Part shown: positions 24,868-63,240 of the stretch, in pieces
Layout of the letters: every line of letters starts with the position of its first letter
Numbering within the stretch: position 1 is the stretch's first letter
Sequence record: KU521356.1
Length of the DNA stretch: 64,000 nt
Direction: 5' to 3' (one strand)
Made by a program: the position numbers and the translations under genes
Notes under the pieces: generated by a model
Seen by the model: the letters and a program-made list of their open reading frames with translations, nothing else
The model's database searches: none
Told to the model about the DNA's origin: nothing

Positions 24868-28839
<3,972 letters not shown>

Positions 28840-30049: not shown

Positions 30050-30979
30050 ATGAGAATTATTGATTATGTACGTGAACTCGCACCAGTTACTGAACGTCGT
30101 GAACTATTAAATCAAATCCGTTCATTACGTGAAGAATATGATGCAACTCTCGCACCAATTATTGACGATGTAGGTGAAGTATTTGGTAATATGCAACTTA
30201 AATCAGATTTAGGTATGCGGTTATCTACTGAACTACGGCGAGCGATTAGTTTTAATACTGAACCGATTAAACTAGTACTGGATACTCTTTCAAATATTCG
30301 TGGTAGCTTTGATATGATCGAAAGCGAAATCCGGCGTTTATTTGCTATTCAGTTTACTAACTCTAATCTAACCTTTGACCGTGCAAACATGTTACGTTTT
30401 GTTGATGGTCTTAGTTTCTATATTCGTTATGGCCGTAAACTACTACTAAATCTAATTGCACAAGAAGCAATGAAATTAGGTAAGGCTACTGAATTAAAAT
30501 CATCTCGTGCTGAGAAAGAATGGCTATACACTAATATGGCGCAATTCATTACTCTGTATCCAGCAATGAGTCTTAAGACTAATGAACTGAAACAACGCTT
30601 AAGTCGTGCATCTAGTGCTGAAGTCAATGAAGGTACTTATGATGTAGCTGTGAGTGCTCTCTCTATAGCTCAACGTGATCCACTTAACATGGATGGCTTC
30701 TCACCTCGTCAGAACCCGTTCGTGCTATTTGGCAAGTTCTTAGCTGAGTATCAGGTTGAACGTTTTAAAGAAGCTGAGCAAGAATTCCTTGCACTTCAAC
30801 TACGTTTACAAGAAATGCGGGAAATGCAAAGTAATGGTAAAGTGGATGCACGCCTACAGAAGCTTATTAAAGAGTATGAAATTCGTATCTCTGATTATAA
30901 CTATCGCCTAGGTATGATCCAAGATCGCGCATCTGAGTTCTTTGCTAACCATCGTGATCTACTATCTCTTGGTCACTAA
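30050..30979 (+). CDS. Inner head protein (phiKZ gp90-like)
   Basis: Helical ORF, AAGGA RBS, synteny. Confidence 0.65.
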   Translation: MRIIDYVRELAPVTERRELLNQIRSLREEYDATLAPIIDDVGEVFGNMQLKSDLGMRLSTELRRAISFNTEPIKLVLDTLSNIRGSFDMIESEIRRLFAIQFTNSNLTFDRANMLRFVDGLSFYIRYGRKLLLNLIAQEAMKLGKATELKSSRAEKEWLYTNMAQFITLYPAMSLKTNELKQRLSRASSAEVNEGTYDVAVSALSIAQRDPLNMDGFSPRQNPFVLFGKFLAEYQVERFKEAEQEFLALQLRLQEMREMQSNGKVDARLQKLIKEYEIRISDYNYRLGMIQDRASEFFANHRDLLSLGH

Positions 30980-31524
30980 TGGAGGGCATTGATATGCCAG
31001 CAACTAATGCTGTACGCCCATTTGGTCGTAATTACTCAGGTGGTCAACAACAGGCCATTTCACGGTTCACTGCTCGTCCCGGTGATCCTCAAGTTGAAGA
31101 ACTATATCTTATCTTTACCAACTTTCCTGCACAAACTGCATATTGGGAATTCCATAAGAAAGTTCTAGCTTGTGCTATTCGTCTTTTTAGCGGAAACTAT
31201 AATTGGTTTATTCTACAGGACAATAATAGTAATATTGATAGTTATAATTATCAATTCCTATTAGATACTGTTCGATACATTGCTACGGGTCATCGACGTA
31301 TTTCAATTACCCAATGGCCAATGTTACTAGCTACTGAACCAGATGCTGGTGCACAACTCATTGAACCGCGCGCTGAAATTGCTACTCTCTTTAATGAGTT
31401 AAAATTAGATCTAGATATTGTTTCAATGATCCAGAATTGGGTTAAACACAAAAACGGTATGAATGATCTAATGTATACCCTACATCTACTATTTGGATCT
31501 GTAGAAGTAATAGATAAGGACTGA
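30979..31524 (+). CDS. Minor capsid protein (phiKZ gp91-like)
   Basis: TAATG coupling with the upstream gene; synteny. Confidence 0.6.
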   Translation: MEGIDMPATNAVRPFGRNYSGGQQQAISRFTARPGDPQVEELYLIFTNFPAQTAYWEFHKKVLACAIRLFSGNYNWFILQDNNSNIDSYNYQFLLDTVRYIATGHRRISITQWPMLLATEPDAGAQLIEPRAEIATLFNELKLDLDIVSMIQNWVKHKNGMNDLMYTLHLLFGSVEVIDKD

Positions 31525-31533
31525 GGACTATCT

Positions 31534-32856
31534 ATGACTAATAATTCACTTAGTCATTCGGTCTTACTTGAATCAATCGACGGGGACAGCCCCGTCGATA
31601 TGATCGCTACATGCGATGGATATCTAAAAGAATTATTGCCATCAATTGAAGATATTCAAAGTAGATTAGAATGCACTGAAAAAGACATTTTAGTTAAAAC
31701 CTATACCGATGGCTTATTTCAAAAATATGCAGATAACCAAGATGTTGTTAGTGAACACATTCTAAAAACTGAGAATGTGTCATTAGAAGACCTATCTAAG
31801 ACAGCACGAAATACCTGGGATGAAATGAAAAAATCCCAAGCAAAGCATCGAGATGAGTTAAAAGAGTATGCACGTATTATTACACAAGGTAATCAACGTA
31901 CTCTTGAACGAATAAACATGCTTTTAGAAAGAGCTGAAAATATTAAGCATGAGCCATTTAAGCAAGAATTAAAATTTAAAAATACTAAACGATTTAGTAT
32001 TGATGGTAAATTCGAACCGACTACAGTTGATCCGATACTCATGCAAGTTAACAACTTGATAGCTTTCTATGATAAATCCCTACTCTTGTATATCCAATCT
32101 GTAGCGGATATCCTTAGGAAATTATCATTTGATGAAAAATGGACTGATAGAGCTGCACAAGACTTTAGTAAGTTTAATGTTAAGAACTGGATGAAGGGTG
32201 CAGTACCTATTAAGAAAGATGATAGATTTAGAGTAAGTTCTACAGTTTATCGTAGTATGCCAGTTCAAGGTAATAAGACTTTATTTGGCGCAGGGCCAAC
32301 TGAAACACAGACTGAAGAGATCAGGGATTGGGATTTTTTAGTAAATACTGTCCGTGATTTTGCCTTTAAGTTTTATACTATTCCTACTATGAAGGATGCA
32401 CCTGAAGGTAACAATACCTTTAAGGTTAATGATACGAGTTCAATTGGAAGACGGTTAGTATTATTAAGCGAAATGGCTAAACGTATAGATGCTAGAAAAG
32501 ATTATGCAACTAAACTAGATTTTGAATTTGGTAGGTTAATGCAGTTAGCCGAGACTAATCGTCAACAAGCTGGTAGGATTCGGGCACAACAATCTAATAT
32601 GCGAAATCGTCAAGCAAAAGTTCAAGATCCTGATGCACCTGATGGCATCCCTGCTATCTCAAATATCATTAATTCAATTACATTAATGATCAATAATGTA
32701 AGTCGCGTTGTAACAGATTTTAGTAATGCTCTTGCTGGTTTAGTCAGAGTAATGGGTCGACTAGTATTCGTGACCGAGTTAGAATTAAAAGCTTACCAGC
32801 GTCCAATTCAAAGACCTACGCAAGAACAAGTAAATAATCCCTCCCAGGTAAGGTAA
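31534..32856 (+). CDS. Inner-body family head protein (phiKZ gp92-like)
   Basis: 440 aa, GAGGA RBS, VSLEDLSK processing-type motif. Confidence 0.65.
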   Translation: MTNNSLSHSVLLESIDGDSPVDMIATCDGYLKELLPSIEDIQSRLECTEKDILVKTYTDGLFQKYADNQDVVSEHILKTENVSLEDLSKTARNTWDEMKKSQAKHRDELKEYARIITQGNQRTLERINMLLERAENIKHEPFKQELKFKNTKRFSIDGKFEPTTVDPILMQVNNLIAFYDKSLLLYIQSVADILRKLSFDEKWTDRAAQDFSKFNVKNWMKGAVPIKKDDRFRVSSTVYRSMPVQGNKTLFGAGPTETQTEEIRDWDFLVNTVRDFAFKFYTIPTMKDAPEGNNTFKVNDTSSIGRRLVLLSEMAKRIDARKDYATKLDFEFGRLMQLAETNRQQAGRIRAQQSNMRNRQAKVQDPDAPDGIPAISNIINSITLMINNVSRVVTDFSNALAGLVRVMGRLVFVTELELKAYQRPIQRPTQEQVNNPSQVR

Positions 32857-32861
32857 TTAAC

Positions 32862-34169
32862 ATGTCTCTACTTAAAATGCTAGACAAACTATCACTTGAA
32901 TCAATTGAAGATCAAGGCACTACGATTCATGGTGATGTTGAATTAGTCGTTGAAAATAAAACTTCTGCTGATGTATCATCCGTTTTAGCAGAAGTAGATC
33001 AGATTGAAAATAATCCCGTAGAAGAAGTTCTTGATGCAGATGATGCTATTCAACCAACTGCATTAGATACTGAAGTAACTATTGTTCAAGCTGAAGATGA
33101 ATTAGGGCTAATTGAAGATGCTAAAGAAGCACTTGAAAAGTTCCAAGGTCTTTTACTTCAAGCTGGTGAAGATGGTATCTCTCGACAAGCAGCTGCCTTC
33201 ATGCATGTTGGCATGGAATCAATCGATCGTATCCTAGGTATTGAAAAATCTGGACTCACTGCCGCGCTTGAGAATTACGATGCTTCTCCACGCAGCGCTA
33301 TTCAGAAAGCAGCTGTTATCTCTCTTGAGGATCTCAAAGAGAAACTAAAAGAAGCAGGTAAGAAAGCTTTAGAGATTATCAAGAAAATTGTTGCAATGAT
33401 AAAGCAGAAGATTAAAGATTTTAATCCTAAGCTGATTGCACTCGATATGCGTATTACTAAAACTATTGATGCTATTAAATCACTCAAAGCCGGTGATCTA
33501 AAGAAAGAAGAGATTAAGTTCACTCCTTCTGAGTATATGGTATCTAGTAGTGGCTTTATTGCAAATAATCCGAAGACTATTGCAGACTTCATGACTGTAT
33601 TCTCAACTCAGTATGTATCTGCTCTTAGGAAATATGGCGAACTTGGAGTACGTTATCTCAAAGGTGACAAGTCTATTGATATTGATCAAGTCACCAGTGA
33701 TTTACAAGCTAAGATGGCTGAAGATATTAATAAAGCCGTTGAGAAAGCTCCTGGTAATGTTAAGTTAGAAGTTACTTCTTCTAAGTCAGGTGTGAATAAG
33801 TGGGAAGTTGTTGAGGGTGATGGGGAAACGGATCTACATGAAGTTGAAGTTGATGTCCGTGCACCGAGTAAAATCTTAGCACATCTTAATATTCTTAAAG
33901 GTCTTGTTATTAAACTACAGGACTTTAATAAGATTGATTACAAGATTGCTGAGAATCTTGAAAAGGCCCTAGCTGATTGGAATCCTGACGAAGCAGGCAT
34001 GTCAAAAGAAACAGCGCGTGATGCACTGAATATTGGTGGTATTGATAATAGTGCACTAGTTAACTATATTGCTAAATGCATCGCTGCGCAGTATACATTT
34101 ATTGTTAAACATGAATTAGCTGCGTACGGCAAAGAAACTTCTAAAGCATCTGAGAATGATGAGAAGTAA
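32862..34169 (+). CDS. Internal head protein, gp93-97 paralog family (gp93-like)
   Basis: AAAFMHVGMESIDR and ISLEDLKEK shared with the neighbouring paralogs. Confidence 0.75.
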   Translation: MSLLKMLDKLSLESIEDQGTTIHGDVELVVENKTSADVSSVLAEVDQIENNPVEEVLDADDAIQPTALDTEVTIVQAEDELGLIEDAKEALEKFQGLLLQAGEDGISRQAAAFMHVGMESIDRILGIEKSGLTAALENYDASPRSAIQKAAVISLEDLKEKLKEAGKKALEIIKKIVAMIKQKIKDFNPKLIALDMRITKTIDAIKSLKAGDLKKEEIKFTPSEYMVSSSGFIANNPKTIADFMTVFSTQYVSALRKYGELGVRYLKGDKSIDIDQVTSDLQAKMAEDINKAVEKAPGNVKLEVTSSKSGVNKWEVVEGDGETDLHEVEVDVRAPSKILAHLNILKGLVIKLQDFNKIDYKIAENLEKALADWNPDEAGMSKETARDALNIGGIDNSALVNYIAKCIAAQYTFIVKHELAAYGKETSKASENDEK

Positions 34170-34179
34170 CAAACATAAT

Positions 34180-34201
34180 GAGGAACCCTTCGGGGTTCCT
34201 C
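34180..34201. terminator. Intrinsic terminator
   Basis: GAGGAACCC-TTCG-GGGTTCCTC (UUCG loop) flanked by CATA and TTATG. Confidence 0.85.
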
Positions 34202-34238
34202 TTATGCTATGTAATTAAGTATTCTTGAGGAATTGTAA

Positions 34239-38763: not shown

Positions 38764-41214
38764 ATGATGGTAAATATTCACAAATATGTAGCCAGCCTTG
38801 AGAACCAAGATGGTACGGCTGTGGAACAGGATGTATCCAAAGTCGAGACATCTGTTAAAGATGATCATGAACTAGTTCAAGATTTAAAGAAAGATAATGA
38901 TGCATCTGCAACTATTGAGAATGAAACTGTTAAAACAGATACTGATATTATCTCTGCTGAAGAACATGAAGAAACAGCACATGCTGCTGATAAGTCAGCA
39001 GTAATTGTTGAAGAAGTTGTACCAGAAGAAACTGTTGTTGAGGAAAGTATTCCTGAACCGCTAGCTACCACTAGTGTCGAAGAAGGCGAAGAAGCAGTTA
39101 AAGTTGCTGAAGCTGAAATCGCTGAAGAAATCGGTACAATTTCTGAAGGCGGTAAAGAGGTTTTAGATTCAACCACTGAAATTATTGAAGCTGCACAAGA
39201 TGCGGCTGATGATACTGAACTAGTACCTGTTGCAGAAGCACCTGGTGAAACAGCAGTGGAATTAACCCCCACTGAAGAAACCCCACTTGGTGACGAAACT
39301 CCACCGCCTGCACCACTATCTGAGGAACTTCCAGCTGGTGATGAACCTGTTTCATCAACCATGGATACACTACCAGATGAAGTGTTAGATGCTGGTGAAG
39401 TTGTAAGTGAAGCAGTCCCTGGTATTGATGACGATGTAACTCCTGAAGAAGCCGGTGCTGAGCAAACAACTGCTGATGAAAGTTCCAATGATGAACCTGA
39501 GACAGAGATCACTGAAACAGAAGAAGTCGAAATTACTGAACCAGCTGTAGCTGATGCTGAAACAGAAGTTGTTGAAACCGTAGAAGATACGCCGGATACA
39601 ACTGATAGTGAAGTAGCTGAAGTAGTAGAGGCGGAATCTGAAAGTGTTCCTGCTGAAGCTGAACCAGATGAAATCGTAGCAGTTGATGAAGAAGTAGCTG
39701 TAACTGATCCAATTGTAGAAGAAGCTGCCGAAACAGCAGAAGTAGCTGAAGAAGGCTTAAGCGAATTGGAAGAAGTTCGGGATGAAGCTGAAGAAGAATT
39801 AACTAATGATGACAGTGATTCTACTGATGTATTAATCAATGAAGCTGAAACTGAAGAAACAGTTGCTGAAACCGAAACGGCATCTACTATTTCCGAACCA
39901 ACAATTGAAGAAGGTGCTGTTGAAGACGACAGTGAAACAATTGTTGCAGAAACAGATGATGACGTTTCAGAAGATGACATCGAAGAAAAGTTAGCTGAAG
40001 GTGAAATTGACATCCCGGATGTTGACGTAGAAGTAACTGAAGATGATGTTGAAGAAGCTGACGAGACTGCTGATGAGGCAGTTGAAGAAGCCGATAAGCT
40101 TGAAGATGACATTGAAGATGGTAAGAAAACCATTGGTCAATTACTTGAAGAGCAGGCATCAAATGAATCCATGCTTGAGATTCTACATTATGGCCTAGAA
40201 CATAAGCAATATAGTCCTCAGTTCATCGTACATGCTAATAGCTGTTTAGAACGCCTGCATAACGCCTTTGATGTCTATTCACCTGGTGTTCCAGCAATGG
40301 AAGATTATGGTTATGGTAATCTAGAAGATTACTATAAGGCGATGGTTACTTCGCTAGAATCATTTAATAGCACTATTGGTAAGTTTGTTCGAAATATTAT
40401 CGACAACATTGCTGAAGGTGCAAATGCATCCATCCATGTTAAAGCTAACCAAAAAGAACTAGCCGCAGCTAATACTAAAGCTGACCAACTTCTAGTTAAG
40501 CTTAAAGATACTGATAATTTTGAAAATAAAGAAATCAAAATTAATGGTATTCTAAAAGGTGATGATAATCTAGTACGCGGTGTTGCTGGAGAAGTTCGTC
40601 GTATTAGCGATATTATTAACAAATGCTTCAAAATCGATGGTGAATACATCGAACGTTTAGTTGGTCACCTATCAACTGCTATTGAAGCTGATAGTGAAGA
40701 AGCTATTGATAAGGCTCTAGAAGAAGCAACTAAATTAGAAGTACCTGTTAAGAAATATCCTGAGAGTTCATTTATCAGTGGAAAACTAGAAGGTAGTTTT
40801 ACCTTCGAGAAGTCTGGCCGTGATGTAACTGGTCGCACTAGTAAAGATATTGAACGATTAGCTGCTATTGCACTTCCAACTGGTGAATGGGGTGCTACCG
40901 GTACTGCTACTGCTAAAGTTAGCCGTAAGGACGTTACTGAACTAATGAAACTTTCTAAAGTTCTAATTGGTCTTGGTAATGCCTCTCTAAAAGTTAGCGG
41001 TAACCGCGGTGTACGTCGTCTTGACCAAGCTAACCGTGATATCTCTAAAGTGGCTAGCATGGATAGTAAAGCCGGTAAAAAGAAAGTCCGGCAACTAGCT
41101 AGTGCAGTATGGGAAGTTGTTGGCCAATCGGCTGAAAACCACACCGTTCTAGTTGATTACATTGTAGCTCTTACCAATGCAATTAACACTGCTGTGAATC
41201 GTGCCATTAAGTAA
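38764..41214 (+). CDS. Internal head protein with a very long acidic propeptide (gp97-like)
   Basis: About 450 residues of E/D/A/T/V-rich low complexity followed by a folded domain after PAME/TSLE. Confidence 0.75.
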   Translation: MMVNIHKYVASLENQDGTAVEQDVSKVETSVKDDHELVQDLKKDNDASATIENETVKTDTDIISAEEHEETAHAADKSAVIVEEVVPEETVVEESIPEPLATTSVEEGEEAVKVAEAEIAEEIGTISEGGKEVLDSTTEIIEAAQDAADDTELVPVAEAPGETAVELTPTEETPLGDETPPPAPLSEELPAGDEPVSSTMDTLPDEVLDAGEVVSEAVPGIDDDVTPEEAGAEQTTADESSNDEPETEITETEEVEITEPAVADAETEVVETVEDTPDTTDSEVAEVVEAESESVPAEAEPDEIVAVDEEVAVTDPIVEEAAETAEVAEEGLSELEEVRDEAEEELTNDDSDSTDVLINEAETEETVAETETASTISEPTIEEGAVEDDSETIVAETDDDVSEDDIEEKLAEGEIDIPDVDVEVTEDDVEEADETADEAVEEADKLEDDIEDGKKTIGQLLEEQASNESMLEILHYGLEHKQYSPQFIVHANSCLERLHNAFDVYSPGVPAMEDYGYGNLEDYYKAMVTSLESFNSTIGKFVRNIIDNIAEGANASIHVKANQKELAAANTKADQLLVKLKDTDNFENKEIKINGILKGDDNLVRGVAGEVRRISDIINKCFKIDGEYIERLVGHLSTAIEADSEEAIDKALEEATKLEVPVKKYPESSFISGKLEGSFTFEKSGRDVTGRTSKDIERLAAIALPTGEWGATGTATAKVSRKDVTELMKLSKVLIGLGNASLKVSGNRGVRRLDQANRDISKVASMDSKAGKKKVRQLASAVWEVVGQSAENHTVLVDYIVALTNAINTAVNRAIK

Positions 41215-41224
41215 CAAACATAAC

Positions 41225-41245
41225 GGGGAGCCTTCATGGCTCCCT
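41225..41245. terminator. Intrinsic terminator
   Basis: GGGGAGCC-TTCAT-GGCTCCCC flanked by CATA and TTTTATG. Confidence 0.85.
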
Positions 41246-41279
41246 TTTATGCTGTTAGACCATGATCTTATGATCTTAA

Positions 41280-57667: not shown

Positions 57668-59911
57668 ATGAGCGTACATGCCCTAAGAGAACTGTTTAAA
57701 CACAAAGGCGAAAAGAATTACGAAGTCTTCTCAATGGAAGATTTCATTGGCCGCCTAGAAAGTGAAATTGGTCTAAATGACAGCGTTGTTAGTCAAGGTC
57801 GTTCCCTTGTTAGCACCATTTCACATGAAAACTTCGGTACCGTACAAGCTACCGACGTTCAAGATGCTGCTGCAATTTATAACAAAATGCAAATGCTCGT
57901 TAACGACTATGGTTTCGAACGAGTAAGTTCCAGTGATCCTCAAGTACGCGCTCGTGAAGAACGTGTTCGTGAGAACCAGATCACTGCTGCTACCATGGCT
58001 GCTATCGCCTGTGCTGATGAAACTAAATATATCCGTGCACTACGTGGTATTACCAAAGCTAAAGCTTCTAATGAAGATCATGTTAAGGTTGTACAGCATC
58101 AGTTCAATGGCCCCGCTGGTGGCATTCAAGTATTCGAAAATGGTGTTGGTCTAGAGAACTATAACGAGAAGTCACAGCGTGATTTCCGTGTTGTAACTAT
58201 TGGTTATAACCTAGCTGCTAGCCGTCAGGATGAATTCGCTGAGCGTATCTATCCGACCACCGTTATCAACCCGATTGAAGGTGGTGTTGTTCAGGTTCTT
58301 CCTTACATCGCTGTAATGAAAGACGTTTACCACGAAGTATCCGGCGTTAAGATGGATAACGAAGAAGTGAACATGGTAGAAGCCTATCGTGATCCTTCCA
58401 TCCTCGACGACGAAAGCATTGCACTAATTCCTGCCCTAGATCCGGCTGGTTCCAATGCTGACTTCTTCGTAGACCCGGCTCTTGTTCCTCCGTACACCAT
58501 CAAGAACGAGCAGAACCTAACTATCACTACTGCTCCGCTAAAAGCGAACGTACGTCTTGATCTAATGGGTAACTCCAATGCTAACCTACTCATTCAGCGT
58601 GGCATGCTTGAAGTTTCTGACACCATTGATCCGGCTGGTCGTCTAAAGAACCTATTCGTTCTACTCGGCGGTAAAGTTGTTAAGTTCAAGGTTGACCGTC
58701 TACCTCGCGCTGTGTTCCAGCCCGATCTAGTTGGTGATACCCGGAACGCAGTTATCCGTTTCGATAGCGATGACCTTGTTGTTAGTGGCGATACCACTTT
58801 CATCGACGGTTCAGCTGATGGCGTTATTAACGACCTTAAGACTGCTAAACTAAGCCTACGTCTAAGCGTTGGTTTCGGCGGTACTATCAGCCTATCCAAA
58901 GGCGATTCTAAGTTTGGTGCTACCGACACTTACGTCGATAAAGTTCTAAACGAAGATGGTCAAGTAATGGATAATGCTGACCCGGCTGTTAAAGCTATTC
59001 TAGATCAGCTAACTGACCTAGCTGTTATCGGTTTCGAACTAGATACTCGCTTCACCAACACCAACCGTCGTCAGCGTGGTCACCTACTACAGACCCGTGC
59101 ACTACAGTTCCGTCATCCGATCCCGATGCACGCTCCTGTAACTCTACCGATGGACACCATGACCGATGAAGGTCCGGGTGAGGTTGTTAAAGCTCTAACC
59201 GTTAACACCAACATCCGTAACAGCAACAACGCTGTTAAGCGCATGCTTAACTACCTTGCTCAACTACGTGAAGTTGTACACAATGGTTACAACCGTCCGA
59301 AGTTTGGTATCATCGAAGGTGCACTATCCGCTGTAATGCGTCCGACCTATCGTTACAAAGAACTAGATCTTGAGAAAGTCATCGACACCATCAAGTCTAA
59401 AGATCGTTGGGACGACGTTTGCGCTGCGATCCTAAACTGTGTTAAAGCTGAGCTATTCCCGGCTCACCGTGATTCCAACATTGAAGCTGCCTTCCGTGTT
59501 ATCTCCGGTAACCAGGATGAAACTCCGATGTATCTCTTCTGCTCCGACAAAGAGATTGCTAACTATCTAATGACTAAAGGTGACGACCGTACTCTAGGTG
59601 CTTATCTCAAGTACGATATCGTTTCCACCAACAACCAGCTATTCGATGGTAAGCTAGTTGTAATTCCGACCCGCGCAGTACAACAAGAAAACGACATCCT
59701 CTCCTGGGGTCAGTTCTTCTACGTATCTACTGTTATCGCTGACCTACCGATCACCCGTGGTGGTCACCAGGTTACTCGCGAAATCGCGGCCATTCCGTTC
59801 AACCTACACGTCAACAACATTCCGTTCGCACTAGAGTTCAAGATCACTGGCTTCCAGAAAGTCATGGGCGAAACTCAGTTCAACGGTAAGCTTGCTGATC
59901 TTAAGCCGTGA
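57668..59911 (+). CDS. Major capsid protein (phiKZ gp120-like)
   Basis: 747 aa, strongly biased high-expression codon usage, AGGA RBS, GLENYNE processing-type site. Confidence 0.9.
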   Translation: MSVHALRELFKHKGEKNYEVFSMEDFIGRLESEIGLNDSVVSQGRSLVSTISHENFGTVQATDVQDAAAIYNKMQMLVNDYGFERVSSSDPQVRAREERVRENQITAATMAAIACADETKYIRALRGITKAKASNEDHVKVVQHQFNGPAGGIQVFENGVGLENYNEKSQRDFRVVTIGYNLAASRQDEFAERIYPTTVINPIEGGVVQVLPYIAVMKDVYHEVSGVKMDNEEVNMVEAYRDPSILDDESIALIPALDPAGSNADFFVDPALVPPYTIKNEQNLTITTAPLKANVRLDLMGNSNANLLIQRGMLEVSDTIDPAGRLKNLFVLLGGKVVKFKVDRLPRAVFQPDLVGDTRNAVIRFDSDDLVVSGDTTFIDGSADGVINDLKTAKLSLRLSVGFGGTISLSKGDSKFGATDTYVDKVLNEDGQVMDNADPAVKAILDQLTDLAVIGFELDTRFTNTNRRQRGHLLQTRALQFRHPIPMHAPVTLPMDTMTDEGPGEVVKALTVNTNIRNSNNAVKRMLNYLAQLREVVHNGYNRPKFGIIEGALSAVMRPTYRYKELDLEKVIDTIKSKDRWDDVCAAILNCVKAELFPAHRDSNIEAAFRVISGNQDETPMYLFCSDKEIANYLMTKGDDRTLGAYLKYDIVSTNNQLFDGKLVVIPTRAVQQENDILSWGQFFYVSTVIADLPITRGGHQVTREIAAIPFNLHVNNIPFALEFKITGFQKVMGETQFNGKLADLKP

Positions 59912-59992
59912 GCTGGAAAGGGTTACCGTTATCTAGAAAATGGGACTATCCGTTATTTGGAAGACGGTAATGCCCGGAAGTTAGAAGAGTAA
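59912..59992 (+). other. 26-codon in-frame extension after the capsid UGA (candidate readthrough tail)
   Basis: TGA GCT GGA AAG ... GAA GAG TAA = AGKGYRYLENGTIRYLEDGNARKLEE; the TAA abuts the terminator. Confidence 0.55.
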
Positions 59993-60001
59993 CAGACATA
60001 G

Positions 60002-60021
60002 GCCCTCCCTTCGGGGAGGGC
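60002..60021. terminator. Capsid operon terminator
   Basis: GCCCTCCC-TTCG-GGGAGGGC flanked by CATA and TTTATG. Confidence 0.9.
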
Positions 60022-60047
60022 TTTATGTTGTATTACATTAAAAAAAG

Positions 60048-60064
60048 TTTAAGATCTATATTAC
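60048..60064 (+). promoter_or_regulatory. Early promoter TTTAAGATCTATATTAC
   Basis: Exact TATATTAC at 60057-60064, upstream of the operon containing the nvRNAP beta gene. Confidence 0.85.
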
Positions 60065-60107
60065 AGTAATGATCATGATCTTCTAATTTAAAAATAGGTT
60101 AATCCAA

Positions 60108-60560
60108 ATGAACGTTCAATTATTTCCAGAAGTCATCGAAAGATGGCAGGATGCCCTGAGGGTATCTCTTATAGAAAAAAATACCATGGTAGATAATAAG
60201 ATGTCTACCGTAGATGATGATAAATACATTAATACTTTCTTTGAAGAATTCCATCCTGTTCAGGATGCCTTTATGCCCAAAGGGCTAGAGGACTTTATTA
60301 CAGATTATGCCAAGAAAAACACTGAGGAGATCCCTCAAGAAAAACAGTTTAAGCGGGCCACCGAAAAGTTATATTGTTCGAGTGACCCGCATAAATGGCA
60401 GAAGTCAAGTAATAAGGAAAAGAGTGAATCCTTTAAGGGAAGGTCCGTACATCAAACTAAAAAGAGGCTCCCCAACATTGTAGATTTGGAGGCCGTTGTG
60501 ATTAAGGTAGATTTCAATGGTAACACTAAAAATTGCGGGGCTTACTCAAGTATCAGTTAA
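60108..60560 (+). CDS. Hypothetical protein (phiKZ gp121-like)
   Basis: AGGT RBS; first ORF after the early promoter. Confidence 0.6.
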   Translation: MNVQLFPEVIERWQDALRVSLIEKNTMVDNKMSTVDDDKYINTFFEEFHPVQDAFMPKGLEDFITDYAKKNTEEIPQEKQFKRATEKLYCSSDPHKWQKSSNKEKSESFKGRSVHQTKKRLPNIVDLEAVVIKVDFNGNTKNCGAYSSIS

Positions 60561-61599
60561 GCCTACTATCGATCACCCGTATGATAAGAAATCGGGAACT
60601 GCATACACTAAGGGTGATCCATACGCTAATTGGAATCTCCCTGTCTCACGTTTTGTTGAGTATCGGAATGAATCATTTCATCGTATTACTGTAGTTGATT
60701 CGTCTGGTCACGCTATCAATATTGGGACATCCCGTAAGTATGTAATGTCTAATAGACTGGTAGTTAAGGTCATTTACCGATGGAGTGGTGATGATAGTTT
60801 TAACTATGAAGTTATGGCTAAATCTATTCCAGGTTTTACACCTGAGGAAATGTTAGAATATATTCAGTCATTTAGTCGACAGACATTCGATCAGTTTAAT
60901 AACCAGTTATCTGAGATTACTATTTGGTATTCAATTGACTTATCAAAACTAGTAGATCAGTATCATGGTGGTTGGATTCAGAGTTTAGGTATCCAAGTAT
61001 TTAAAACTGAGTATAGTCAGTATTTTGAATTTTATCCAAATAGAAATATTAGTCCTCCTGGTTACAGCGGACTTAGTCCAGAAGAAGAAGCACTTTCTAA
61101 TCAAGTATGGAATGAAACATATTCTTTAACGTATAATACTGACATCAATAAACCAGATAAATTGTTTTATGTAATGGCTGGCAGAATTATGGCCATTGAG
61201 TCAATCTACAATCCATCATTAGATCCTGGTCTTATTGTTAATATCCGTGGTAAACATGGATGTATTAGTCATAATGGCGAAAAGAGATATGTAATACCTC
61301 CTGAACAGTTCCATGAAAATGGTTTCTTTAGAACACATGAAGAAGCTGCTGCAATGGTTGGAATTAAAGATAAGAAAGTTATTGAACGTCTTAAGACTGC
61401 ACTCTTAACAGCAGCTGATATTAAGGAAAGGGAAGCCCAGGAAAAAGCAGCTGGTACGTTTGATAAAGAATTCAAACCAAAAGATGTTGTATTGATTCAT
61501 GGTCTAAAATGGGGTGATCTAAACTCCATTGCCTCTGATCTAGTATCATCCATTAAAATTGTAGGTTCACTGATGGATTTAATTTTGCCAAAAGTTTAG
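60517..61599 (+). CDS. Hypothetical protein (phiKZ gp122-like)
   Basis: 360 aa with AAGGT RBS. Confidence 0.75.
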   Translation: MVTLKIAGLTQVSVKPTIDHPYDKKSGTAYTKGDPYANWNLPVSRFVEYRNESFHRITVVDSSGHAINIGTSRKYVMSNRLVVKVIYRWSGDDSFNYEVMAKSIPGFTPEEMLEYIQSFSRQTFDQFNNQLSEITIWYSIDLSKLVDQYHGGWIQSLGIQVFKTEYSQYFEFYPNRNISPPGYSGLSPEEEALSNQVWNETYSLTYNTDINKPDKLFYVMAGRIMAIESIYNPSLDPGLIVNIRGKHGCISHNGEKRYVIPPEQFHENGFFRTHEEAAAMVGIKDKKVIERLKTALLTAADIKEREAQEKAAGTFDKEFKPKDVVLIHGLKWGDLNSIASDLVSSIKIVGSLMDLILPKV

Positions 61600-61608
61600 G
61601 AGTTTATA

Positions 61609-63240
61609 ATGCCGGATCCATTTCTAATTGAAAAGATTCGTGAAAATACGCCTTGCATGAATCCAACACTAGCAAATGGTATCACAGTCGAGCACACCAT
61701 GACTCGTGATCCAAATACTGGTGTTAATATGACCAGGCGTTATATTGATTCTTTATTTGATATCAGTTCAGTTCTATTTCCCGATGGCTTCAAATATGAA
61801 GGCAATCGTGCATGTACACCGCTTAAGCATTTTGAAGAGATTACTCGGGAATATAATGCTAAGCGTATTGCCAATATTGCTCCAACTGATATGTACATGA
61901 TTGACCTAATGTTTAGTTACAAAGGGGAAATGCTTTATCCTCGCCCAATGTTGTTACCAGCTTTTAAGAGAGGCAATATGGTAACTATCAATGGTGCGAA
62001 ATATATCGGTTCACCAGTATTAACTGATGTTGGGTTCTCTGTACTTAATGATAGTATCTTCATCCCGTTTCGTCGTACTAAGCTAACCTTTAAACAAACT
62101 GACCACCATTACATGTGCAATGGTCAGCGTAAAATCATGTATGTGATCTGGTCACAGATTCACAATGAAATGGCTAAGCGTACTAAACGAGATCTGGATA
62201 ATCGACCACACATTGAGTCATGTTTAGCTCATTATTTCTTCTGTCAGTTTGGAGTAACTCAAACTTTCAAACAATGGGCTAATGTAGATATTAAGTGTGG
62301 ACTACTGTCTGATTTTCCTGAAGAAGAATATCCACGTGAAAAGTGGAATATTTATTCCAGTGCAACGTTAAAAGGCAAACATCCCACCGGTGAAATGGTT
62401 CTTGTTATACCTCGTCATCAAGAATCTATTTTTGCTACACGACTTATCGCTGGTTTCTGGTATGTGGTCGATGCATTTCCAATGCGGTTTACTCGACCTG
62501 AATATGTAGATAGTACCAACTTATGGCGTGTTATCCTAGGTCACATGGTGTTTGGTGATTTTGAGCACCAAGGTAAAGTAGAGGAAAACATTGATTCACA
62601 CCTGCACAGTTTCTGTAATTCACTAGACGAAATGACTATTGAAGAACTTAAAACAGTTGGTGTCAATGTAAGTACTATTTGGGAACTTCTTTACGAGATC
62701 ATGACTAGTTTGGCTCATCATCTTTATGCTACTGATATTGATGAAACTAGTATGTATGGTAAAAGGTTAACAGTACTACATTACTTGATGTCAGAGTTTA
62801 ACTATGCTGTAAGTATGTTTGGCTATATGTTCCAGTCTAGGCGTGATCGTGAATGGACTGTGCAAGAGCTAAATGAAGGTTTAAAACGTTCCTTTAAACT
62901 ACAGACAGCTATTAAACGATTAACAGTGGATCATGGTGAACTCGATACAATGAGTAATCCAAACTCCAGTATGTTGATTAAAGGGACATCTATCCTAGTT
63001 ACACAGGATCGAGCTAAAACAGCTAAGGCGCATAATAAGTCTCTAATCAATGACTCATCTAGGATTATTCACGCATCTATCGCTGAGGTAGGTCAATATA
63101 AAAACCAACCTAAGAATAACCCGGATGGTCGAGGTAGACTTAATATGTATACCAAAGTTGGTCCAACTGGACTAGTTGAACGTCGTGAAGAAGTACGTGA
63201 AATAATTGACAATGCTCAGTTAATGTTCCGTGCAAAATAA
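61609..63240 (+). CDS. nvRNAP beta subunit N-terminal part (phiKZ gp123-like)
   Basis: 543 aa with AGGAG RBS and C-terminal IHASIAEVG...NPDGRGRLN resembling beta region D; synteny. Confidence 0.8.
   Translation: MPDPFLIEKIRENTPCMNPTLANGITVEHTMTRDPNTGVNMTRRYIDSLFDISSVLFPDGFKYEGNRACTPLKHFEEITREYNAKRIANIAPTDMYMIDLMFSYKGEMLYPRPMLLPAFKRGNMVTINGAKYIGSPVLTDVGFSVLNDSIFIPFRRTKLTFKQTDHHYMCNGQRKIMYVIWSQIHNEMAKRTKRDLDNRPHIESCLAHYFFCQFGVTQTFKQWANVDIKCGLLSDFPEEEYPREKWNIYSSATLKGKHPTGEMVLVIPRHQESIFATRLIAGFWYVVDAFPMRFTRPEYVDSTNLWRVILGHMVFGDFEHQGKVEENIDSHLHSFCNSLDEMTIEELKTVGVNVSTIWELLYEIMTSLAHHLYATDIDETSMYGKRLTVLHYLMSEFNYAVSMFGYMFQSRRDREWTVQELNEGLKRSFKLQTAIKRLTVDHGELDTMSNPNSSMLIKGTSILVTQDRAKTAKAHNKSLINDSSRIIHASIAEVGQYKNQPKNNPDGRGRLNMYTKVGPTGLVERREEVREIIDNAQLMFRAK

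Follow-up and report, generated by a model that had tools for sequence, protein, structure and literature searches.

Probable UGA readthrough at the end of the major capsid protein gene of phiKZ-like phages and its conserved repeat tail

The major capsid protein gene of this phiKZ-type giant phage ends in a UGA codon behind which a short tail is kept in frame and conserved as protein across a clade of relatives, which argues that programmed UGA readthrough very probably gives rise to a minor, extended capsid protein. The analysis was carried out on a window of 64,000 nucleotides from sequence record KU521356.1, in which the capsid gene and the features at its end described below lie on the plus strand, and on relatives of this phage. 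Among nucleus-forming jumbo phages, phiKZ serves as the reference; its capsid is known at near-atomic detail and its virion proteome has been catalogued, yet an extended form of its most abundant protein appears in no annotation among the database records inspected. No description of such a form was found in the literature. Proteomic search databases and genome annotations of the clade should hence carry the extension.

Architecture of the capsid gene end

The major capsid protein ORF is of the phiKZ gp120 type and comprises 747 codons (57668–59908), which match residues 1–747 of gp120 in PDB 8y6v. Its DNA is identical to that of KTN4 (100%) and 99.3% identical to that of phiKZ. The ORF is closed by a TGA at 59909–59911, the proposed recoding site, with G as the next base. 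As an earlier note on this DNA had claimed, 26 sense codons follow in the same frame (59912–59989) and lead to a TAA at 59990–59992. The translation of this predicted readthrough tail, as it stands, is AGKGYRYLENGTIRYLEDGNARKLEE. It is built of a short Gly-containing linker, two full 8-residue repeats of the pattern Arg-x-x-Glu-Asp/Asn-Gly-x-x (tail codons 6–13 at 59927–59950 and 14–21 at 59951–59974), and a truncated third repeat of five residues (tail codons 22–26 at 59975–59989). The internal repeat, likewise described before, was found again at the DNA level, where 5 nucleotides distinguish its two copies and 3 of these differences are synonymous.

The TAA stop of the predicted extended form lies within TAACAGACATA (59990–60000) and is followed by an intrinsic terminator (60000–60023) consisting of a GC-rich hairpin of 10 bp with a UUCG loop and a subsequent T-run. 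The earlier note had also held that the context of this TAA, a short motif and then a hairpin, is that of true gene stops, and the motif count agrees: TAACARACATA occurs only three times in the window, with 0.22 copies expected by chance, and its two further occurrences coincide with genuine TAA stops, those of the ORFs that end at 34169 and 41214; a hairpin and TTATG come after each of them. The terminator sits past the stop of the tail and not directly past the TGA. Hence, the tail is located inside the capsid mRNA. In the relatives, the terminator begins 6–32 nt past the stop of the tail.

TGA is the stop of only 11 of the 57 ORFs in the window (19%), TAA being the default. Stretches of 20–60 open codons past the stop are also found behind other ORFs of the window. 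Thus, 26 open codons in a single genome are unremarkable, and their significance can only come from a comparison with relatives.

Conservation of the stop codon and the tail

The comparison comprised some 35 different capsid lineages within the phiKZ clade, with protein identities of 55–75%. A homologous in-frame tail of 26–30 codons is present in 23/23 such TGA-ending lineages, which belong to at least eight genera, and absent in 11/11 TAA-ending lineages. One further lineage, L048, exhibits a TGA followed by an in-frame ORF of 203 codons that encodes an Ig-like domain (Big_2, Pfam). Tail-bearing lineages without exception use TGA as the stop, and tail-less ones use TAA. The TGA of the 23 tail-bearing lineages is followed by A (16), G (6), or C (1). 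In a neighbour-joining tree, the tail is found in both deep branches of the clade; six state changes are needed, and each of them couples the identity of the stop with the presence of an extension. In L020, a sister lineage without a tail, one deletion has left only a remnant of the 3′ end of the tail, and the stop is TAA.

The earlier note had named disruption of the tail frame in relatives, by stops or indels, as what would speak against readthrough, and such disruptions were looked for. The frame proved to be open over 26–30 codons in 23/23 TGA-ending lineages, compared with 1/23 for the +1 frame and 5/23 for the +2 frame. Frame 0 reaches a mean BLOSUM62 score of 2.30 per residue versus 1.14 and 1.43 for the other frames. 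The readthrough interpretation of that note is thus supported both by the coupling of TGA and tail in all lineages and by substitutions that are of the protein type.

The more distant chimalliviruses RAY, OBP, RTH11, and DT01 end their capsid gene in TAA and have no tail. Goslar and RP12 have TGA instead, with 28 and 15 open codons behind it, respectively; no relatives of these two were found for a comparison.

Selection on the tail

Repeat 1 contains its Arg, Glu, and Gly each in 23/23 lineages, and repeat 2 contains Arg and Glu in 22/23 and Gly in 23/23. Judged from the tail alignment, selection acts herein at the protein level, since the invariant Arg, Glu, and Gly are specified by several synonymous codons. 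All four GGN codons are in use in the invariant Gly columns, CGN and AGR codons both occur in the invariant Arg columns, and GAA as well as GAG in the invariant Glu columns.

The synonymous divergence pS amounts to 0.60 in the tail versus 0.57 in the last 30 capsid codons. A value as high as that of the adjacent capsid means that the lineages are old and independent. Pooled pN/pS is 0.63 in the tail, which is only moderately below 1, compared with 0.42 in the adjacent capsid codons, and the constraint on the tail is concentrated in about seven positions. There are also nucleotides that are held despite a change of amino acid: tail codon 3 ends in G in 23/23 lineages. Alignment column 24 reads NCC in 20/23. 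The transposon-insertion tables for phiKZ are resolved by gene only and carry no information on the tail.

Relationship to gp143

The tail is homologous to the C-terminal module of gp143 (Pfam DUF7941). Comparison of the tails with the gp143 modules by HHalign resulted in a probability of 97.8% and an E value of 1.3e-12, with 26 columns in register. Like the tail, the gp143 module consists of Arg-x-x-Glu-x-Gly-x-x repeats, two of them full and a third truncated, at the extreme C terminus; the invariant Arg and Glu three residues apart and the C-terminal position, by which a module of this type is recognized, are present in the tail. Whereas the capsid tail stands behind a UGA, the module of gp143 is ordinary coding sequence behind a globular domain. 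This domain resembles gp131-like fibre-anchor domains (Foldseek E 1e-6). phiKZ gp143 serves as a holin-specific regulator of lysis (PMC12894885), so that a peptide common to the capsid protein and a lysis regulator constitutes an unexpected link. Annotations list gp143 as a virion protein as well.

The two phiKZ DNA copies, in gene 143 and in the capsid tail, exhibit many synonymous differences and unrelated 3′ flanks, so that recent gene conversion does not account for their likeness. A joint loss of both copies was considered as well and rejected, as the tail-less lineage L076 keeps the gp143 module. Hence, neither copy requires the other.

The AlphaFold model of gp143 was used as a proxy for the structure of the tail. 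The module is extended in this model, with a pLDDT of 74–85 and bridge residues every 8 residues. The tail itself matched no family in Pfam, and a PDB profile search returned only a chance match to a designed protein (E 3.8).

RNA hairpin downstream of the UGA

Folding and lineage comparison revealed a conserved RNA hairpin (59920–59975) that starts 8 nt past the UGA. Its outer stem pairs GGG (59920–59922) with CCC (59973–59975), its inner stem pairs CCGTT (59926–59930) with GACGG (59963–59967), and the apical part is variable. The stem of TTACCGT (59923–59929) and ACGGTAA (59964–59970) that had been noticed before, 11 nt past the UGA, is real and corresponds to the inner part of this larger hairpin. 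The layout conserved among the lineages is TGA, 8 nt, GGG, 6 nt, CCGUN ... NACGG, 5 nt, CCC. No pseudoknot was detected past the UGA.

The hairpin of the window has a folding z-score of −4.5. Scores are negative in 15/15 lineages with a mean of −1.98, compared with −0.54 for the homologous gp143 module (p = 1.6e-4, with kinship uncorrected). The hairpin is specific to the capsid copy of the module; the gp143 copy is without it, and its RNA shows no special structure. Of the cells in the stem, 88% are paired, versus 33–53% when the partner strand is slid. Cells with a double change number 8, compared with 2.4 in shuffles, and 0/500 shuffles reach 8, a count in which shared ancestry is uncorrected. 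Covariation is of modest extent and in part confounded with coding, since the pairs of the inner stem fall on the conserved Arg and Asp-Gly codons. Part of the conservation of the tail is at the RNA level.

This raises the question of whether the region is translated at all. The approximately 80 nt past the TGA could form an untranslated, structured 3′-UTR hairpin that, for example, protects the very abundant capsid mRNA against decay or aids the terminator, which lies directly downstream, and the resemblance to a protein would then be a relic left when the 3′ end of gene 143 was duplicated in the distant past. The conserved hairpin and the positions held as nucleotides whatever the amino acid are in line with such an element. 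However, such an element could do without an open frame, and yet frame 0 is free of stops in 23/23 lineages versus 1/23 and 5/23 for the others; nor does it require TGA instead of the usual TAA in every carrier. Neither would it preserve Arg through switches from CGN to AGR or Gly by means of four codons. The Noxifer-type lineages L014 and L053 have a different hairpin yet keep the peptide repeats, and a duplicated relic would have decayed, given synonymous sites near saturation. An untranslated element is therefore considered unlikely.

A conserved hairpin closely past a UGA is also reminiscent of selenocysteine insertion, in which case the tail would be translated with the UGA read as selenocysteine and the hairpin would be a SECIS-like element recruiting the SelB of the host. 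Pseudomonas hosts do make a selenoprotein, formate dehydrogenase. Known SECIS elements are, however, compact, unlike the capsid hairpin, which spans about 56 nt and has its loop about 30 nt from the UGA; moreover, its apical part, the SelB site in known elements, is the least conserved. No SECIS match was found in Rfam up to E = 10, and the scan of 59700–60200 yielded only sub-threshold chance matches, none of them near the gathering score. Decoding as selenocysteine thus appears very unlikely.

Alternatively, ribosomes that have terminated at the UGA might re-initiate and synthesize the tail as a small peptide of its own, leaving the capsid protein without an extension. Purine-rich strings resembling Shine-Dalgarno sequences occur past the UGA in many lineages, and L048 has an ATG two codons past its TGA. 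Against this stands that no ATG, GTG, or TTG is conserved near the start of the 26–30-codon tails, and that re-initiation requires neither the capsid frame nor specifically a UGA, which makes it highly improbable. That the frame is open by chance, or that it is what remains of a once longer capsid protein truncated by a nonsense mutation and now decaying, is barely tenable: 26 open codons past a stop are not unusual in one genome, but the stop–tail coupling and the frame and codon comparisons already contradict it, the tail is kept in both deep clades with saturated synonymous sites, and tail losses occur by deletion together with a switch to TAA.

Proposed readthrough and placement of the extended protein

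In programmed readthrough, the preferred explanation, most ribosomes would stop at 59909–59911 and produce the 747-residue gp120 precursor. A fraction of them would insert an amino acid at the UGA, most plausibly by means of a near-cognate host tRNA such as tRNA-Trp, and read 26 more codons up to the TAA at 59990. The product would be minor and have 774 residues in total. Readthrough is probably favoured by the choice of UGA, by a purine as the following base, and by the conserved hairpin 8 nt downstream, which at this spacing would be positioned at the mRNA entrance of the ribosome when the UGA occupies the A site. Decoding of the UGA by a suppressor tRNA of the phage was considered but not borne out: no tRNA gene was found in the window, and one phiKZ-like genome contains 7 tRNAs, with no suppressor and no tRNA-Trp among them (PMC11877940).

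In the published structures, the arms at the C terminus of the capsid protein form a six-helix bundle at the center of each hexamer, and at the pentamers, they touch gp244, a protein on the outside; in the deposited model of the capsid, residue 747 is the last (PDB 8y6v; PMC11297242). With the C-terminal arms at the capsomer centers, the tail would probably emerge there. It would thus be carried by a minority of subunits, at the capsomer centers and probably on the outside, and these centers are where sub-stoichiometric density from the tail is to be sought.

The relationship to gp143 suggests that the tail may serve as a small docking or recognition peptide for a partner that is also recognized by gp143. 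A more far-reaching and rather doubtful version holds that hairpin-assisted UGA readthrough, a mechanism not known so far from dsDNA phages, places the small repeat peptide shared with gp143 on a minority of capsid subunits, and that the capsid and gp143 compete for or share one partner. If true, this would either couple the making or assembly of capsids to when lysis occurs or bring gp143 to the particles.

Comparison with known recoding systems

Programmed UGA readthrough of this capsid gene would be a variant of a known recoding strategy. In the RNA phages of the Qbeta group, a leaky UGA ends the coat gene, and minority readthrough leads to A1, an extended coat protein present at low copy number. 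The capsid gene described here resembles this arrangement by likewise ending in a UGA, predicted to be leaky, that is followed by an in-frame C-terminal extension. Unlike the RNA phage Qbeta, the present phage is a dsDNA, nucleus-forming jumbo phage with a capsid protein of the HK97 fold. Its extension comprises 26 residues as opposed to the folded domain of about 200 in A1, and a conserved hairpin past the stop further distinguishes it. Searches in Pfam and by PDB profiles revealed no homology of the tail to the readthrough domain of A1.

Readthrough stimulated by an RNA structure that lies some 8 nt downstream of the stop is known from eukaryotic viruses (PMC13517186). The capsid gene shares with these cases the UGA, the short spacer, and the conserved stem-loop but differs in that translation is bacterial, that no pseudoknot was detected, and that the stimulatory role of its hairpin is putative. 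To our knowledge, hairpin-stimulated readthrough of an ordinary stop has little precedent in bacteria; if the extended form is made, it provides a bacterial example of a readthrough-associated hairpin.

T7 10A/10B and the extensions of capsid and tail proteins in tailed phages, which carry Ig-like decoration domains, arise by programmed −1 or +1 frameshifts. Common to these and to the proposed readthrough is recoding at the 3′ end of a major structural gene that yields a minor, longer form displayed on the particle. Unlike in the T7 10B type, however, the present extension stays in frame 0, and most lineages have the other two frames closed. Should the extended capsid protein be made, tailed dsDNA phages, whose recoding is otherwise known from frameshifts, would add stop-codon readthrough to their repertoire. 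L048, the relative with the longer extension, has its Ig-like Big_2 domain in frame past the TGA.

The capsid gene, its stop codon, and the tail

The window belongs to a phiKZ-type Pseudomonas phage, its region being 100% identical to KTN4 and 99.3% identical to phiKZ. The ORF encoding gp120, the major capsid protein (57668–59911, plus strand), comprises 747 residues and matches PDB 8y6v over residues 1–747. As described in the earlier note, it ends in a TGA (59909–59911) that is followed, in the capsid frame and on the same strand, by 26 sense codons, here called the tail (59912–59989), and by a TAA (59990–59992). Eight nucleotides past this TAA lies an intrinsic terminator on the plus strand (60000–60023), formed by a 10-bp GC-rich hairpin and a T-run. 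Hence, the tail lies within the capsid mRNA. The tail's TAA was also said to share the context of true stops, which is borne out: the window contains TAACARACATA at three places, and the other two are genuine TAA stops of ORFs ending at 34169 and 41214, both followed by a hairpin and TTATG. The whole 3′-end module, TAACA(A/G)ACATA–GC-rich hairpin–TTATG, spans 34167–34205, 41212–41250, and 59990–60027; the first two copies each supply a head gene with its true TAA stop, and the third supplies the TAA stop of the capsid tail. Likewise, the TTACCGT/ACGGTAA stem starts 11 nt past the UGA, and the copies of the internal repeat differ mostly synonymously (three of five differing nucleotides).

Open runs of 20–60 codons past the stop are present in several other ORFs of the window, and a 26-codon run taken alone is not significant. 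TGA is a minority stop codon in this genome, terminating 11 of 57 ORFs, with TAA terminating 36. A "hypothetical protein" overlapping the tail region is annotated in PP968062.1 (HPP-Temi) and PV037725.1 (Viktualia); all other records inspected carry the tail without annotation.

Coupling of stop codon and tail across relatives

Blastn matches in four other genera extend 150–185 nt beyond the annotated capsid stop. Capsid 3′ ends were gathered from GenBank phages, IMG/VR, and metagenomes, and duplicates were removed, giving about 35 lineages with 55–75% capsid identity to the window. A homologous in-frame tail of 26–30 codons follows the capsid TGA in 23 of 23 lineages, and an in-frame sequel of just 1–15 unrelated codons follows the capsid TAA in 11; in one further TGA lineage, the uncultivated L048, the in-frame sequel is an ORF of 203 codons that encodes an Ig-like domain of the Big_2 type (Pfam E 4e-9). 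A neighbour-joining tree of the capsid protein requires six state changes, and stop codon and presence of an extension are coupled in each. The tail is found in both deep branches of this tree, that is, the Noxifer-like clade and the phiKZ/201phi2-1/D6-like clade. Among the D6-like phages, lineage L020 has a TAA stop, and a single deletion has removed the tail except for part of its 3′ end. Sister lineages L027 and L053 differ in the same manner (TAA without and TGA with a tail, respectively), as do the relatives L054 (TAA, no tail) and Noxifer (TGA, tail).

Protein-like conservation of the tail

The earlier note proposed that the tail is translated, and a search of relatives for stops or indels in its frame found frame 0 open in 23 of 23 lineages, compared with 1 of 23 for frame +1 and 5 of 23 for frame +2. 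Frame 0 has a mean pairwise BLOSUM62 score of 2.30 per residue, the other frames 1.14 and 1.43. In the codon alignment, Arg (column 8), Glu (column 11), and Gly (columns 13 and 22) are present in all 23 lineages, and Arg (column 17) and Glu (column 20) in 22. These residues are spelled by several synonymous codons, namely all four GGN at both Gly columns and CGU, CGC, CGA, and CGG plus AGA or AGG at the Arg columns. The tail has the same pooled synonymous divergence (0.60) as the final 30 capsid codons (0.57), which indicates old lineages. Its pooled pN/pS (0.63) exceeds that of the adjacent capsid codons (0.42); hence, overall constraint is weaker and focused on about seven positions.

A likely RNA hairpin downstream of the UGA

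A single layout is common to all tail-bearing lineages: TGA, then GGG after an 8-nt spacer, CCGUN after another 6 nt, a variable middle, NACGG, and, 5 nt further on, CCC. With kinship ignored, 88% of the alignment cells pair, versus 33–53% when the partner is slid by one to three columns, and double-sided changes occur in 8 cells versus 2.4 in shuffles, a value reached by 0 of 500 shuffles. Some nucleotides are fixed where the amino acid varies: all 23 lineages have G as the third base of tail codon 3, and 20 of 23 have NCC at alignment column 24. All 15 lineages scored have negative folding z-scores for the tail RNA (mean −1.98; window −4.5), whereas the RNA of the homologous module in gp143 shows no unusual structure (mean −0.54; Mann–Whitney p = 1.6e-4, kinship ignored in all these scores). 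The hairpin thus belongs to the capsid copy and is not a by-product of the peptide. Because the statistics take no account of common descent and the conserved codons for Arg and Asp-Gly share nucleotides with the inner stem, a conserved hairpin in the capsid copy is rated as likely, not as proven. An Rfam scan of 59700–60200 matched no family, SECIS families included.

A related module in gp143

Tblastn with the 26 tail residues finds a second site in every phiKZ genome, and the best matches in Noxifer and Phabio lie inside annotated virion proteins. This site is the extreme C terminus of gp143 (PHIKZ143, NOXIFER_141, PHABIO_216), a protein of 178 codons in phiKZ (L059:1501–2034, the phiKZ gp143 locus). 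All 45 family members, down to 31% identity, bear the same terminal module of 8-residue repeats, two full and a third truncated; herein, Arg and Glu, three residues apart, are invariant and Gly is nearly so. When the 23 capsid tails are compared profile to profile with the ends of 18 gp143 proteins, 26 columns align in register (probability 97.8%, E 1.3e-12). Recent gene conversion as the source of this likeness is contradicted by the many synonymous differences between the phiKZ DNA copies and by their unrelated 3′ flanks. The gp143 module is kept in tail-less capsid lineages (L076).

Recent work identified gp143 as a holin-specific lysis regulator (PMC12894885); by transposon sequencing, the protein is non-essential. 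GenBank lists gp143 as a virion structural protein. The globular part has a match to Pfam DUF7941 and, in the AlphaFold model (pLDDT 89), is similar to a chain of 9XQD, the phiKZ baseplate outer-peripheral model (Foldseek E 1e-6, TM 0.60/0.69), which contains gp131-like fibre-anchor domains (PMC13250141). The module is modelled as extended, with bridge residues every eight residues (pLDDT 74–85). The virion annotation, beside the published lysis role, suggests a dual role.

Proposed readthrough and site on the capsid

The simplest reading of these sequence patterns is partial UGA readthrough by a host near-cognate tRNA. This tRNA would decode part of the UGA encounters, aided by stop context and hairpin, and would yield a minor capsid protein longer by one inserted residue plus 26. 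No tRNA genes were found within the 64-kb window, and the seven tRNAs of a phiKZ-like genome include no suppressor (PMC11877940). For the readthrough frequency, the residue inserted at the UGA, and the tail's location on the capsid, we rely on inference. At each hexamer centre, the C-terminal arms of gp120 (residues 728–747) join into a six-helix bundle with a ~9-Å pore; at pentamers, they swing outwards to touch gp244, an external protein (PMC11297242). It follows that capsomer centres are where an extension would emerge, probably outside the capsid, and crowding there would fit a sub-stoichiometric extended product. The module common to capsid tail and holin regulator is, speculatively, the most intriguing lead on a binding partner.

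In two recent structural papers, the gp120 model stops at residue 747 and an extension goes unmentioned; full-text literature searches for translational readthrough in phiKZ-like capsid genes found no account of it. Coat-protein extension through a leaky UGA is a known kind of event, as in Qbeta A1. The extension proposed here is not homologous to A1; it would occur in a dsDNA jumbo phage, add a very short repeat peptide, and be accompanied by a hairpin.

Other loci

In L048 (IMGVR_UViG_3300043122_000192), the in-frame Big_2 ORF past the capsid TGA occupies L048:1835–2449; its close sisters L049 and L022 have a TAA capsid stop and lack this ORF. Since an ATG lies two codons past the TGA, the ORF may encode a decoration domain added by readthrough or else be a gene with its own initiation. 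In the distant chimalliviruses Goslar (L081:1677–1766) and RP12 (L082), the capsid TGA is followed by 28 and 15 open in-frame codons, respectively, unrelated to the phiKZ tail. In the stretch separating the terminator from the following gene, ATCTATATTAC (60054–60064), preceded by an A-rich run and conserved in five genera, looks like a candidate phage promoter motif. Three same-frame pairs of adjacent genes, parted by one stop and a few codons (30979–32856 with TGA, 60517–63240 with TAG, and 24868–28836 on the minus strand with TAA), probably reflect ordinary gene packing.
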